From Salpingoeca rosetta (Eukaryota; Protista; Choanoflagellata): a stretch of 64,000 nt of DNA. Location: assembly GCA_033442325.1 (NCBI GenBank), contig JAWQFM010000029.1, forward strand, positions 710,847 through 774,846, given 5' to 3'. A program made the translations under genes and the position numbers. The notes below the pieces were generated by a model. The model was not told the origin of the DNA. It did no database searches and saw only the letters and a list, made by a program, of their open reading frames with translations. This document shows positions 8,820 through 23,012 of the stretch, in pieces; positions within the stretch are counted from its first letter, which is position 1; every line of letters begins with the position of its first letter.

Positions 8820-10214
8820 CGGTGTGTCAGGAAACTTTAGACAAACGAGACACCATGTCAAACGCATTAGAATAGACGAGCGATGTGCAATCATCACACC
8901 GAACAACCATCCCACCTTGCTGTCTGCCAGTCCACATACTTCGCTGACGGCGGTGCGCACGCGCGCGTGTGTGTCCGTGTGCGCGTCGGGAAATGTGGCA
9001 GCGATTTCCTGCACGCGGACGCGTGTTCTTCGTCGCAAGCTCAAGCTAATGCAATGTGTGGAGGAGGGTCATGTGGTGCTGGTTATCAGTCCAAGTGAAA
9101 AGCGAGGGTGGACAGGCACGGGCACGCAGAGGTAACATGCCCGTGTACACATCTCACGGTGGAAATTACGCAATGCAACACAGCACACACCCACACATAC
9201 ACAACACACGCGCGCGCCCACACCCACACATGCAAACACACACACACACACACATGAGCTCACACAGCACACACAACACACATAACACAGCACAACGCAC
9301 ACACACGTACACACCACACCTCGTGCACGCGTGCTTTGAGAGCGCTGATTTCGTCCTTGTTGTCGCGTGTGTGCTGTGACATGGTTTGCATCCTCGCCTC
9401 CAGACGCACACGCAGGTCGTCAATCTGCTGCTTGATGGCGGCGTCGGTGACGTTGTTGTTGAGGGAGATGAGCGCCCGCACACGTCGCACCTCCACCCCA
9501 TCCCGCACCTCAACCTCGCTCCCTTCCCCGCCATCCAGCGCAATGCCCAGCAGAATCTGGCTTGGCTGCGGGTGCGCGCTCGCCTGGGCAACACCTGCGG
9601 GCCACTCAGCACTGGCAGCACTGGCGTGATCAGCGTTGCCTGCATGTACGGTGGTGCTGGTGATGGTGGGCATGCGAGACGGCTGCTTGCTCTTGCTGCT
9701 GTTCTTGCTGGTGCTCGAGCTGTTGCTGTTGTTGCGACGCCTACCATTGGCGCTGCCAGTACTAGCCTTCCTCTGCTTGCCACCATCATTGTCGCCGTGG
9801 CTGGTGGTGCTGCTGCTTCGCTCTTTCTTGGCGCTCGTGCTCCGTCGCCTGCTGCTCTGCCGATCGCCAGGAGTGACAGCGGGGGTGGCGTGGGCGCCGA
9901 CGTGCTGCTTTGAACTCGCAGCATCGCCCTCGGGTGCTTCAGTCGACTCGACACGTGACACCTGCGTTGATAAGTACGACACGGAGTAGTGGTTGTCAAG
10001 CACCGCGCTCTCCTCAACTTCAATCATCACCCATTCGTCGTCATCATCATCGTCGCCGTCGTCGTCACCATCATTCTTGGGCGCAGTTGCATCTGCCTCA
10101 GCAGTTGACGCAACGGTGCCTGCTTTCGTTACCGATGCAGCTGTCTTGTTACCATCACGATGATCAGAAGAAGCCGTGTCACCACCGCCATCCCCACCAC
10201 TCTCATCACCGAAC

Positions 10215-10302
<88 letters not shown>

Positions 10303-13242
10303 AGTCGTCGTGGATGCTGAGCAGTTCAAACTCTGCGGCTGCGTCCTCCAGCGAGACCGCATACGGCCCCGTGTACAGCAGATCCCCCGTCTTGACAGGA
10401 CCCCCGACCTTCGTCTCGATTGTGCTGTGTGCCATTCATCGCACGTGCCGTTGCGTACATGGCGTGGGATTTGGGTGTCAGTGGGCGAGATTGTGTGTGT
10501 GTGTGTGCGTGTGTGCGTGTGTGCGTGAGTGAGTGAGTGTGCACGGGTACATGAGTGTGCATGTGTGCATGTGTGCATGTGTGCTGTATCATTGAGCCCC
10601 GGTACCCTGCACAGCGTGATTGGTGGTAACAACCACGTCTCGTCGCCCGTTCACGACATTCAACAACACTGAGTGGTGTCTGCAGCAAATACATGCACAC
10701 CACCACCACCACCACCACCACCACCACCACCACCACCACCACCACCACCAAGCTGTGTCCACCAGTGCGTGACATAGACTCACCCGAACATGCACACGAG
10801 GTCGATGTGCTGCACAGGGAGTGACTCCACTTCCCGGCGATTGGCGCTGGCATGCCGGTGTGTGGTGGAGTGATGGTGTGGTGAGGTCGAAGGTGAGGTG
10901 TTGTCAGGAAGCACAACTTCACACATGCACGCACGACATGGCAATAGCATTTCACACACACGCGCGCACACAAGCCGATGGAGAAGAATGCAACAGTATG
11001 CGGTAATGCGTACATGGTGTGTGCTGATCTGCTGATGACACCGCACACGACAGCACCGGCAACGTTCTCGCGGCGCAACCGCTCAATGACCAGACGCCCG
11101 CCCGCAGCCGAGAACAGACCAACAACATCGCCCTCCTCAAATGACCTGCATAACACACACACACATGGGCGGGTGTATGCGGGTGCGTACTTTGGGTTGA
11201 ACGACACAAGTTCACACCTGAATGCCTTGCAATGATAATGTGTGCACCATACACACATACACACGAGCACATACACGAGCACACACACGAGCACAGCAAC
11301 AACAGCACCACCAAGAAACAAAGAAGACACATCTGGGTGTGCGCGTACTCTGATGCGCGGAGTTTGGGGAAGAGGTAGGCAATGTCGGCACCCGTGCTGG
11401 TGAGATCGGCCCCGCACTGAAAGCACTTGCCTGTGCAGATGAGGATGGGTGAGGCAGTGGTGGTGTTGGTGATTGGTGAACCCGAATACACACACACACA
11501 CACATACACACACACAATGACAAGAACACACACGGCACAGGGGCAAGAAACACAAGCGCAAGTGCACGCACTAGCACGACAGCCAACTCACAGCTGACGT
11601 TGAAGACGACTTGGAGCATGCCGCAGGAGGGGCAGTTTGCCATCCACACCTCTATCGACAGCAGTTCGTCAAGTGATGCGTGTGATGGCACTGGTGATGG
11701 TATGATGGGTGCGTCGGGTGACATGCCACTTGTGGTCGTGGTTGTGGCTGGCGAGAGCCCGCTTGTTGCTGCCGACGATGGTGACAGCCCTGCCCCAGGT
11801 GATGATGCGTACGATGGCTGCGGTGGGTGGGCTGGCAAGCCCTCTGAAAGCGTGTGTGCGAGCGAAGGTGGTGATTCTTGTGGCGACAGCGGTGAGAGGT
11901 GCTGTTCTTGCCACTGTTGCTGTTGTTGATGGAACTGTGGCTGTTGTTGCTGTTGTTGTTGGAACTGTGGCTGTTGTTGCTGCTGTTGTTGGAACTGCTG
12001 CTGTTGTTGGAACTGTGGCTGTTGTTGGATGGATGCTGGTGGGCTGAACGCCAGACCAAACGCGTGCGCACCGTCCATCTCCTCCTGCAGCTGCGGGTCG
12101 TGGAGACTGCCAAAGTTGATCATGTCTGCACCGACAAGCTGCATGCCGGCCTGTGGCGACGGCGTTGCGTCCATCGATGACGACGAGTGTCCAGATGGCG
12201 AGCCAACAACTGACCATTGGAGAGGAGGGGGAGTTGGGTTGTGTGGTTGAGTGCGTGTGCGGTAGTTGATTGTGTGAGTGTTGTTGAGTGTACGTGAGAT
12301 GTTGGCGCTATGATTTTTGAGTGCAAGAGCGTAACAGCGGCACTGATCAAGTGGTGAGGCGGAACCCTCTCGCAGTCAATCAACATCACACATGATCAAC
12401 ATGACATCACCAGCCCTGTACACCAATGCCATTGTCGCGACGAGCACTGCCATGAACATGCGCACAGCCGCAATCACGCCATCACTCAATCACGCACCAC
12501 CACGATTGCCACCGCACCTGGAGGGATGTCAAATATGTCTGACCATCCTCGTGGCACCGAGGCGCCTGCCGTCGTCGTCAGCATCTCGGGGTCGTTTGCA
12601 CCTCCGCCCAGCATGTTCGGGACCGAACCGCCCATCCCACCGTCAGGTGGCGGCTGGCGTCCTTGCTGGTGGTGGTCGGGGAGAGTGTATGGCTGTGTCG
12701 TGTGCGCGCGTCCGTGTTTCTGCGCGCGTGTGCGCGAGTGGCGAATCGGTCCGGTCCTCCGCGGGCTCCGAGCACTGGACGACGACGACGACGACAATGA
12801 AGACGGCGATGCTATTAATGCCGAAAAAGGAGGGGGGGGGAAGGGTGTGATCACGGGTGCATGCGTGAGTATGTGTGTGTGTGCATTTGTGGTTATTGTG
12901 TTTGTGTGTGTGTGTGTGCGCATTGTGTGTATTGTGTTTGTGTGTGTGTGTGCGTGCGCACATGTGAAGGTGAAGTCGCGTTGCTTTTCTCAACAATTCT
13001 GTTGTCACGTGACGAACTACGTTGCTTACCGCCGTGCGACACTGATTGCGGCAGATGTTGTTGTTGGGGCTGGTGGTGCTGCAATGCCGCTTGCAGATAC
13101 GCGTCACCTGCAGGTGACGCGCAAGCAATGTGTTGTTATAGTCGTCGATGGCGGGTGTGAAAGGGAGGCAACCAAGCTCAGGAGGGAACACGCACATGCC
13201 TTATCAACAGCACAAAGAAATGAGCACAGAGGGCACACACAC

Positions 13243-19270: not shown

Positions 19271-21702
19271 ATACACATGCACGTGAGCGTGTGTAAGTGT
19301 GAGAGGAGAGAACAGAAGAGGACTGGCCGAGACCACAAGGATTGCAAGTGTACAACGAGCAAACACTCGAGCAACCAGTCGAGCACGATTCAACTTACGC
19401 CACGCGCTGGTCGCTGCCGCAGAGAAGAACAACACGCGTGTATGTCCCGTACTGTCCAGTGAATGTCACCCGCTGCAAGGCACACACACACAATGTGGCG
19501 ACGAGTGCATGATATGAGAGCGTGTGAGTACTGGGGGTGAACAGCCAAACACACCTACAAACACAGACATGTCGCTGCAGGAATGCCACGATACAACCGT
19601 CCCAACACAAGCGCACACGCATCCAAGCACACGCGCAAAAGCACGAATGCACAATCACAAACGCACACAATTACACCATACACCACACACACACACACAA
19701 ACGCAAAATCACGCACCGTTGTCTCTGGCATGAAGCGAAGCATGCGTTGCGATGAAAGGGAGACGATGAAGCACCACATGGCCGGCAGGTCGCGGAGTGT
19801 TGGCTTGCGGAACAGCCGCAGCCGCGCCAGTTTGCGCGCCGGCTGCGCATGGAGCAGCAGCCCGCCCGTCGACGGTATCACGCGCACAGAGTTGGAACCT
19901 GACGTTGGGAAGGAGAGAGGGGGAAGGAGGGGGAGGAGGGGGACGCGAGCAGTGTTGTGTGGTATGGTGTGTGGGGTGTGATATGGTGTGTGGGGTGTGG
20001 TATGGTGTGTGGGGTGTGAGGGCCGTGCAAGGGTGGCAGTACCACATTCGCTATGTTTGCGTGACTTGGGTGTTTGTGCAATGGTATGCGGAGTTGTGCT
20101 GGTGAATAGGGACACAAGCCTTCCCCCAAAACACATTAAGCACGTGATGAGCAAGAGCCCGGTGCGGGACTGACTTGTGACGGAGGGATGACGATGAAGC
20201 GATGGATGGCGCACCTGCTGTGCCCGCTCAACCTGACACACACGCACACACAGGACCATTGTGATCAGGAAAGAGCGGTGCCAAGTGCGAACAAACAACA
20301 AACCGCAACAACTGCACCATGCAAGCGCTTAACACCACACACACATACACATACACATACACATACATAAACAAACACCCCCTGCCGGTACCTTCTTGAG
20401 GCGCTGTAGGATATTCTCCTGTGTGCGCACAATGCCGTCCACGCGCTGCTTGAGTTGCGAGTTGAGGTCGTCAATCTGCTGCTTGATGGCGGCGTCGGTG
20501 ACGTTGTTGTTGAGGGAGATGAGCGCCCGCACACGTCGCACCTCCACCCCATCCCGCACCTCAACCTCGCTGCCTTCCCCGCCATCCAGCGCAATGCCCA
20601 GCAGAATCTGTTTGGACCACGGCGAGGTGCGCATGGCCTGGGCAACACCTGCGGGCCATGCATCCGCTGACGACAGCGACGTCAACACGCCCCGCTTGCG
20701 AGGTGACACGCCATCACCAACGCCACTTCCAACACCACCATCAGCAACATCGGCGTCGTTGCCGGGGGTGCTGCTGCGGTTGGCTGCTTGCTGCTGGGTC
20801 GACACCCTGCCATGCTGGGGTGCCAGCGGCGCCGGGGAGGTGGAGGGGGCGGATGTGGACGCGGACATCGACGATGGCGGTGAGGATGAGGACGGCTTGG
20901 TGGCAGCATCCTCCCGGTTGGTGCCGGTGTTGGTGCCGGTGTCGGTGTTGGTGTTGTTGCTGTTGCTGTTGCTGTCAGCTGCAACATCGGCCACGGCTAT
21001 CTCCTCGTATCCAAACGCTGACGGCGGCGCCCCAGTGTCCGATGACACCGCCTCCTTCTGCGTCAGCTGGTGCTGCGTGTCTGCTTGCTGTGTTTGCTGG
21101 TAGCGAGGCGAGGTTGGGCTGCTTGCAAGCACGAATGTCGTGCCTTGGGTGGTCACGTTGTCATACTCGCCGCTGCCGCGCCCGCCATCAAACCGGTGGC
21201 CGGCAACCCGTTCCAGCTGGCGCCGTTTCAGTTCATCCCGAGCGGAGCCTCCACCAACATCGCCGTCGTTGTCATCATCTTCGCTGTCATCATCGTCGTT
21301 GTCGCTGCTGCACACCACCTCGTCGTGTCCGCTGCGTGTCAGGACGGGCTGCTTTGTGCGTGCTGCCGTCTGCGTGTGTGTGTTTGTGTCCGTGTCGGGA
21401 CGGCCACCGCCGTTCACGAGCGAGGGCGTGGCCGACGACGACGACAGCGCCGGTGGCGAGCGGCTGTTGCCTGCAGGCATCTCGCCCACAGCTGCACCGG
21501 ACGTGGCGTGGGAGAGCGGCGTGGACGTGACAGAGCCATCGTCCTCGTCAGTCACGTCGTCATCGTTATCGTACGGCCCCGTGTACAGCAAATCGCCCGT
21601 CTTCACCGGACCGCCGACAAGCACATGCACGATGCTGCCGTGCGGTGGCGGTGGTGGTGGAGACACGGGTGTGAGTGAGGGGGTGGGTGGGTGGTTGCGT
21701 TA

Positions 21703-21784
<82 letters not shown>

Positions 21785-22303
21785 AGTTGTGCACAAGGAG
21801 GGACAGGAGCAATGTGCTGGTTTGACAGGCGTGAAGGAGTGGCGGAGGAACTCACCCATACATGCAGACCGTTTCCACGTCAAAGGTGTTGCGCACTTTC
21901 GCGTTGTTTGCATTTGCACTGCACAAACACGTGTGCAAGCAGCAACGGACAGGTGAGAAAGCAGTGGCAAGTGGAGTGGGGGCAGTTGTCGTGATGCACA
22001 ACAGCGCAGCACTTTGATGAAAGCAAGTAAGAACACGTCACAGAGGCAACCAATGGTGTTAACGAGCAGTTGCTCCCTCAACAAAACCGAACCAAAACCA
22101 CCATCACCACAATGACCACCACCACAAACACAACCACCCTTGGCTGCGTACATGGTGTGTGCTGAGCGGGTGATGACGCCGCACACGACGGCGTCGGCGA
22201 CATTATCGTGGCGAATCCGCTCCACAGCCAGACCGCCGCCCGCAGCCGCAAACAGCCCAACGACCACACCTTCCTCAAACCGCCTGCACAGCCACATGTG
22301 TGT

Positions 22304-22339
<36 letters not shown>

Positions 22340-22731
22340 ATTGAGCGTTAGCAGCGAGTCACACCAAGCAGAACGTGGCCAGCTCACACAAGTGAATTGC
22401 TACTTTGCCAGAGACACATGCACCACCACCACCGCCACATGCAGCAACAGCAAACAGCAAACAGCCAGCATCCAACACCAAACAGTAGTGCGTACTCGTA
22501 TGCGCAGATCTTGGGGAAGAGATAGGCAATGTCGGCGCCCGGCCGCGGTGCCGGCAGCGGCATGTTGCACTGGAAGCACAGCTGCTCAACCTCTGTGTAA
22601 GGGGGAAGGAGGATGGGGAAAGGGTGTGGTGATCGTACGCGGGGGGTGGGATGATGGTGAGTCATGAAAGGAGGAAAGAAGGGGGGGAGAGCGGAGCTGT
22701 TAAAATTTCAACGCGACCAAATGCCAACACA

Positions 22732-22819
<88 letters not shown>

Positions 22820-23012
22820 TTCCTGTCCAAAGTGCATCGTACGTGTTTTTGCAATGGCCTGTGGGAGGTGACAGGAAGGACAGTGTCCCCAGAAAAAGTC
22901 TTCACACTGCAGATCGTCTGGGAAGAGCGCACTCGCATTGCCGGACAACGCAGCCACTTCCCGGTTCATTAGCCCGTACGCCTGCCGCGGTGCGTCATTG
23001 CAAGCGTGATTT

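Follow-up and report, generated by a model that had tools for sequence, protein, structure and literature searches.

Can a chaperone domain of phage tail spikes sit in the middle of a cellular eukaryotic protein, and would it still cleave itself there? The question is raised by a 64,000-nucleotide stretch of the genome of the choanoflagellate Salpingoeca rosetta (GenBank assembly GCA_033442325.1, contig JAWQFM010000029.1, positions 710,847 to 774,846), hereafter the window, within which positions are counted below unless another sequence is named. The minus strand of the window carries two tandem paralogous genes, both of which encode a domain resembling Peptidase_G2 (20392-22592 in copy B, 9320-11430 in copy A), and these are the only copies of the domain in the 55.4 Mb assembly searched (68 contigs). 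In tail spikes such as phi29 gp12, Peptidase_G2 lies at the C-terminus and works as an auto-chaperone; homotrimers form first, and autocleavage with ATP-dependent release follows. Reuse of a phage tail-spike chaperone domain in a eukaryotic transcription factor has its textbook example in MYRF. A literature search brought up no account of a G2-type domain in a cellular gene of a eukaryote.

We consider it probable that a phage G2 chaperone domain was domesticated here as a folding and oligomerisation module that no longer cleaves. On this reading the domain, encoded in four exons in mid-protein, descends from the intramolecular chaperone Peptidase_G2 of phages but has diverged from it, has lost the acidic catalytic motif and has presumably abandoned self-cleavage by the G2 mechanism. 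Together with the putative coiled coil that follows, the domain would act in folding and oligomerisation, probably as a trimer, and in its assembly role it would resemble the unrelated S74 phage domain of MYRF. Both the oligomerisation and the absence of cleavage are what we infer.

Relatives and the cleavage motif

A word search with the last exon of the domain retrieved one environmental open reading frame (ORF), P0001, and an exhaustive comparison of a profile of the C-terminal (C) block with 1.84 billion representatives returned only four true relatives, P0001, P0002, P0003 and P0005. Two of them, P0002 (1350 amino acids, aa) and P0003 (1650 aa), derive from transcripts of the choanoflagellate Salpingoeca infusionum (EukProt EP00049) and are complete ORFs, while P0127 (786 aa), a member of the cluster of P0001, is a single continuous ORF on a Tara Oceans contig and shares about 45% identity with P0002. 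These natural contiguous homologues served as queries for domain-level searches, folds and profiles, and the window exons were entered as separate rows. Viral contigs, searched with the family block, yielded no relatives, and the proteins are so far known only from choanoflagellates. The sole match to the N-terminal (N) block, at a metagenome locus (L002, 3049-3201), is a reading frame antisense to a gene for a bacterial aminotransferase, on a contig of high GC content, and was set aside as a chance match.

The prototype of Peptidase_G2, the IMC autoproteolytic cleavage domain (PF11962, MEROPS G2), comprises residues 692-854 of phi29 gp12 (PDB 3GQH, 3SUC), where the cleavage motif reads Ser691-Asp692-Phe-Ala-Glu695-Tyr-Phe-Glu698. 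Glu695, Tyr696, Phe697 and Glu698 are invariant in 120/120 G2 sequences, and Asp692 is present in 116/120. Where G2 has D-x-A-E-Y-F-E, all family members have D-[IM]-A-Y-x-F-[PR], as part of a longer motif, G-[AR]-D-[IM]-A-Y-[LTM]-F-[PR]-K, in which Asp, Ala and Phe are kept and Tyr696, Glu698 and Ser699 are lost. At the position of Glu695, each of the five sequences with coverage there (copies A and B, P0002, P0003 and P0127) has Tyr; the missing catalytic Glu, which the sequence-only reading had pointed out in the two copies, is thus missing from three homologues as well. Shifting the alignment by one residue would pair the family Tyr with Tyr696 and would still supply no Glu.

Work by Xiang and colleagues in 2009 is said to have found Glu695 to be needed for gp12 cleavage. 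The uncleaved 'pre-mature' gp12 entry, 3SUC, carries E695Q together with two other changes relative to wild type, and this substitution and the invariance of the residue fit a requirement for Glu695 in phi29. Because Glu695 has been replaced by Tyr and Tyr696, Glu698 and Ser699 have gone, self-cleavage by the G2 mechanism would not be expected in the family. The residues lost from the N block fall largely on the cleavage motif (Glu, Tyr, Glu, Ser). By hand tally, the family has the identical residue at about half of the positions of this block that are (near-)invariant in G2, the shared residues being Asp, Phe, Gly, Val, Leu, the G-V-I-S run and Ala. Core positions kept and a cleavage motif lost are the pattern expected if the scaffold was retained and the catalytic site abandoned.

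A domain of the same ancestry might nevertheless still process itself without the G2 Glu, for example via one of the conserved residues Asp, Tyr and Lys in G-x-D-x-A-Y-x-F-x-K. Strict conservation of G-[AR]-D-[IM]-A-Y-x-F-[PR]-K holds across species whose identity in the rest of the domain is only about 45%; this exceeds the apparent need of a purely structural N-terminal strand, and the Asp at P1' of the phage scissile bond (phi29 Asp692) is retained in 5/5 family sequences. Cleavage would free an N-terminal Cys/His and poly-Gln part from a C-terminal helix and beta-rich part in the manner of MYRF, with which the proteins share a parallel architecture (a putative DNA-binding front, activation-like poly-Gln, a phage chaperone domain and a C-terminal part), and S74-type domains are present in the same genome. 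However, the invariant Glu695, the very residue substituted in the uncleaved phi29 crystal form, is absent, as are Glu698 and Ser699, and inspection of P0002 revealed no transmembrane segment or other obvious tether. We regard such Glu-independent processing as unlikely and favour a folding module that would no longer cleave.

Likely kinship to Peptidase_G2

The sequence-only reading had assigned the domain to the G2 type. Its assignment fares well in that several separate, weak-to-moderate signals from language-model, hhalign and structural comparisons agree, and less well in that no profile search reached significance; since those signals concur, we judge kinship to Peptidase_G2 likely but not proven. 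In a search with ESM-Atlas features, residues 685-905 of P0002 returned 10 named clusters among the 30 best, all of them PF11962 with a score of 0.91. A replicate with residues 200-312 of P0127, which span the N and middle blocks, recovered the same unnamed viral clusters, and PF11962 was again the only named family (0.83-0.84). For hhalign, a G2 profile of phi29 gp12 and 120 G2 relatives was compared block by block. The middle block of the family (..DLVCMYGIV.V.V.G....G..) aligned with G2 ..EWnVVGL.GQv.VRID.TV..GD.. at P 0.0016, a value reached by 0/200 column shuffles, and the N block fell into the expected register, with Asp on Asp692 and Tyr on Glu695, at P 0.11 (27/200 shuffles).

Two AlphaFold models were used, the second made without the long helix that had swamped the VIA structure search with the first. 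In a structural comparison with a predicted model, 3GQH, which had been named beforehand, ranked 4th of 48,161 chains in collinear register, and the part of the model that includes the C-terminal beta block superposes on 3GQH residues 800-854. An Atlas shape search placed a PF11962 cluster in its first row (model residues 26-195, TM 0.31). In BFVD the best E value was 1.7e-3, the third-ranking entry is named 'Preneck appendage protein', and the alignments cover nearly the whole model.

Several results count against the kinship. PF11962 matched neither the six-frame translation of the 55.4 Mb genome nor the single exon translations, and it gave no match on P0002, P0003 and P0127 at E up to 10; the family sequences do not reach its gathering score of 25 bits, at a scale on which phi29 gp12 itself scores 325 bits. 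A PHROGs search found nothing, a PDB profile search returned nothing beyond coiled-coil matches to the helix, the N and middle blocks gave chance matches only when compared by tblastn with 50,697 phage records, and hmmsearch --max with the G2 hidden Markov model, filters off, stayed within the range of shuffled sequences. The G2 profile is narrow, its relatives being at least 45% identical, and an IMG/VR search to widen it returned only close phi29-like relatives. The hhalign alignment of the C block is not collinear. On the structural side, both AlphaFold models have low confidence in their N half, and Foldseek against PDB found nothing significant with either model.

The domain could be no relative of G2 at all, and instead an unrelated or fold-level-similar small beta-barrel, of a type that occurs in phage cement and decoration proteins and in many others, with a coincidental likeness in its motifs. 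Such a barrel would suit the negative or marginal outcome of all sequence-profile methods, and language-model scores of 0.9 are also reached by 4-10% of shuffled proteins. The best structural matches are phage cement/decoration proteins with Z equal to or above that of 3GQH, and the Atlas shape list also holds a Phage_cement_2 cluster. Yet the five motifs stand in G2 order, with many (near-)invariant positions identical in both families, and two language-model searches, with queries that are about 45% identical, named no family other than PF11962. The rank and collinearity of 3GQH, named in advance, and the near-complete span of the BFVD 'preneck appendage' alignments likewise speak against a generic barrel. 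The cement/decoration proteins themselves (Borrelia phage BB1 cement protein, phi29 gp8.5 N base; Phage_cement_2, DUF2190) offer no counterpart to the N-terminal motifs and no language-model signal, and they are not fused to fibres or cleavage motifs. A chance resemblance between barrels therefore seems to us fairly unlikely, and descent from the phage G2 domain the better account.

Judged by its sequences, the family is a variant outside Peptidase_G2 proper, below the threshold that defines it and without the catalytic residue. It lies under every sequence threshold and has lost Glu695, Tyr696, Glu698 and Ser699. Whereas the phage domain forms the C-terminus of a trimeric beta-helical spike, the family domain is internal in a eukaryotic cellular protein; three introns interrupt it in copies A and B, a disordered insert of 25 to ~370 aa occupies a loop of it, and a coiled-coil helix and about 400 further residues follow.

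Gene structure and maintenance of the two copies

The window is eukaryotic in character, with GT-AG introns and CA/TG microsatellites. All peptide strings quoted in the sequence-only reading lie on the minus strand at the places it gave, and its description of an intron-split domain with a long low-complexity insert holds for both copies (Table 1). In each, the same domain is encoded in four exons with GT-AG at all boundaries, and the three introns inside it are phase 2, with identical phases in A and B. P0127 crosses all three inferred junctions (..KICAY-E-RFEEG.., ..RSAHT-I-AN.., ..VCMY-G-IVH..), the first of them matching the exon 1/exon 2 junction of copy B, and the blocks of copies A and B are collinear with contiguous P0002, P0003 and P0127; these contiguous homologues thereby confirm the splice junctions of both copies. 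Exon 2 of copy B is the counterpart of the G2 core motifs G-x-V-x-L and G-V-I-S-x-x-A, and the next exon after the start of the helix begins near 20232.

The insert that splits the domain measures about 300 aa in copy B and about 260 in copy A. Across the family the loop ranges from 25 to ~370 aa, with about 25 aa in P0002, about 150 in P0003 and more than 300 in copy B and P0127. In copy A the insert includes a run of Asp codons, about 30 in number and GAT in the coding direction, at 10215-10310, and the intron before it has a long (GGT)n run at 10682-10760. Several donors read GTACGC or GTACGA instead of GTRAGT (22495, 22151 and ~22843; 11348 and 11013), at positions equivalent in A and B.

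On the Tara Oceans contig (L090, ERR868441 k127_1241680), a gene at 145-2505 encodes the knuckle and the whole domain in one ORF, with no introns in the domain and a TG-rich intron directly after it. Since this intron is kept, the contig of P0127 seems not to be a cDNA, and the internal introns seem genuinely absent from this relative. As read from these contigs, introns inside the domain differ between close lineages.

Copies A and B are paralogues under purifying selection. Counted exon by exon, their ratio of nonsynonymous to synonymous divergence (dN/dS) is 0.37 at a dS of 0.79, which indicates that both copies are maintained by selection, and no other part of the protein is as well conserved between species as the domain. 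A 146-nt tract over the C-terminal block (9414-9559 in A, 20465-20610 in B) is 99% identical between the copies; identity in the other exons is 79-89%, and outside the tract dS is about 0.8. The tract looks like the product of a recent gene conversion.

The large low-complexity inserts and the microsatellite-rich introns around the exons might be expected of a decaying pseudogene or a mis-assembled viral insertion. Against this, all eight exons are open, with canonical splice sites and conserved phases in both copies, full-length orthologues are expressed in the S. infusionum transcriptomes, and the flanks are ordinary eukaryotic gene sequence with no viral genes. We find this explanation extremely improbable and reject it on the intact frames, the conserved splice phases and the dN/dS of 0.37.

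Table 1. Features of the domain-coding regions of copies B and A (positions in the window)
Feature	Position	Strand	Remarks
Copy B C4 knuckle, first half (CPSC)	22871-22882	-	Exon upstream of domain; P0127 reads CTSC there
Copy B domain exon 1	22496-22592	-	..CFQC..GADIAYLFPKICAY; knuckle second half CFQC at 22567-22578
Copy B degenerate G2 cleavage motif, G-A-D-I-A-Y-L-F-P-K	22516-22539	-	Within domain exon 1
Copy B intron 1	22284-22495	-	Phase 2; donor GTACGC, acceptor CAG
Copy B domain exon 2	22152-22283	-	RFEEGVVVGL..CGVITRSAHT; RFEEGVVVGL ... AVVCGVITRSAHT
Copy B intron 2	21919-22151	-	Phase 2; donor GTACGC
Copy B domain exon 3 (63-nt mini-exon)	21856-21918	-	Ends ..VETVCMY(G)
Copy B intron 3	21635-21855	-	Phase 2; donor GTGAGT; long (CA)n run
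Copy B domain exon 4, whole	20392-21634	-	IVHVLVGGPVKTGDLLYTGPY, insert of ~300 aa, WPAGVAQ..LLGIALD..VRALISLNNN, helix
Copy B exon 4 start	21571-21634	-	IVHVLVGGPVKTGDLLYTGPY; with exon 3, block matching G2 V-V-G-L-L-G-Q-I-x-V-R-I..V-K-x-G
Copy B low-complexity insert (Asp/Ser/Thr/Asn-rich)	20659-21570	-	~300 aa; domain loop
Copy B C-terminal beta block	20503-20658	-	WPAGVAQ..QILLGIALD..VRALISL
Copy B start of long alpha-helix (putative coiled coil)	20392-20502	-	NNNVTDAAIKQQIDDL...; runs to donor at 20391
Copy A C4 knuckle, CPSC half	11623-11634	-	
Copy A domain exon 1	11349-11430	-	CFQC at 11414-11425; GADIAYLF at 11369-11392
Copy A domain exon 2	11014-11145	-	
Copy A domain exon 3	10784-10846	-	..HIDLVCMF
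Copy A domain exon 4	9320-10424	-	Strand block, insert with poly-Asp run, C-terminal block, helix

Protein architecture and the parallel with MYRF

The proteins are large and mostly of low complexity, and they resemble transcription factors. P0002, free of introns, runs from a Cys/His-rich N-terminal domain through poly-Gln tracts, the G2-like domain and a long helix to a beta-rich C-terminal part. The G2-like domain is internal (residues ~690-885 of 1350), and the helix after it, about 60 residues long and predicted by AlphaFold with pLDDT >90 in this homologue, is followed by about 400 aa more. The Cys/His-rich N-terminal domain is common to copies A and B, and the G2-like domain is preceded by poly-Gln and, in some members, by a zinc knuckle. 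No Pfam domain was found at any position in P0002, P0003, P0005 or P0127. The sequence-only reading had offered the adjacent C4 knuckle as a possible part of the mechanism, a proposal that is weakened by its distribution. The knuckle reads CPSC...CFQC in A and B and CTSC...CFHC in P0127, but it is partial in P0003 and absent from P0002; it is therefore no constant partner of the domain and no general part of its mechanism.

Phage G2 domains trimerise on their own, as described for Dpo31 D4 and gp12 (PMC13317679), and the S74 domain of MYRF trimerises that factor (PMC3742443, PMC5436001). Like MYRF, the family would place a phage tail-fibre chaperone domain between a putative DNA-binding and activation part and a C-terminal part in a holozoan protein. 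Unlike the S74 domain of MYRF (PF13884), the G2-like domain belongs to a different fold family and no transmembrane segment follows it. PF13884 gave no match on P0002, P0003 and P0127 at E up to 10, and the S74 Ser-Lys dyad (Ser-Asp-x-x-x-Lys) was not seen by inspection. Genuine Peptidase_S74 matches of the MYRF type (ICA) above the Pfam cut-off occur elsewhere in the genome, at C26:204967-205158, C7:45578-45769 and C6:1886223-1886288.

The parallel could be carried as far as function. The family would then be a second, independent holozoan capture of a phage fibre chaperone, here of the G2 type, which processes itself independently of Glu and frees the N-terminal part, as a nuclear fragment, from a beta-rich tether at the C-terminus. 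We hold this fuller scenario to be quite unlikely, and a domesticated module that folds and oligomerises without cleaving is the explanation we retain.

A route by which G2 domains could have entered eukaryotes is suggested by a match of the phi29 G2 domain to chain cU of PDB 8h2i (described as P22, 1343 aa; E 9.6e-6). We take 8h2i to be a chlorovirus capsid structure and cU, presumably, a chlorovirus fibre protein; if so, giant viruses would be one possible route. If the kinship is true, choanoflagellates repeated the MYRF type of reuse with a different phage chaperone family, G2, after which the catalytic Glu would have been lost, introns and a large disordered loop gained and a coiled coil added. 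The family would then be a natural 'E-to-Y' variant with which the folding and trimerisation role of G2 domains may be separated from their role in cleavage, and phage fibre-assembly modules would have been recruited as oligomerisation devices more than once near the origin of animals.

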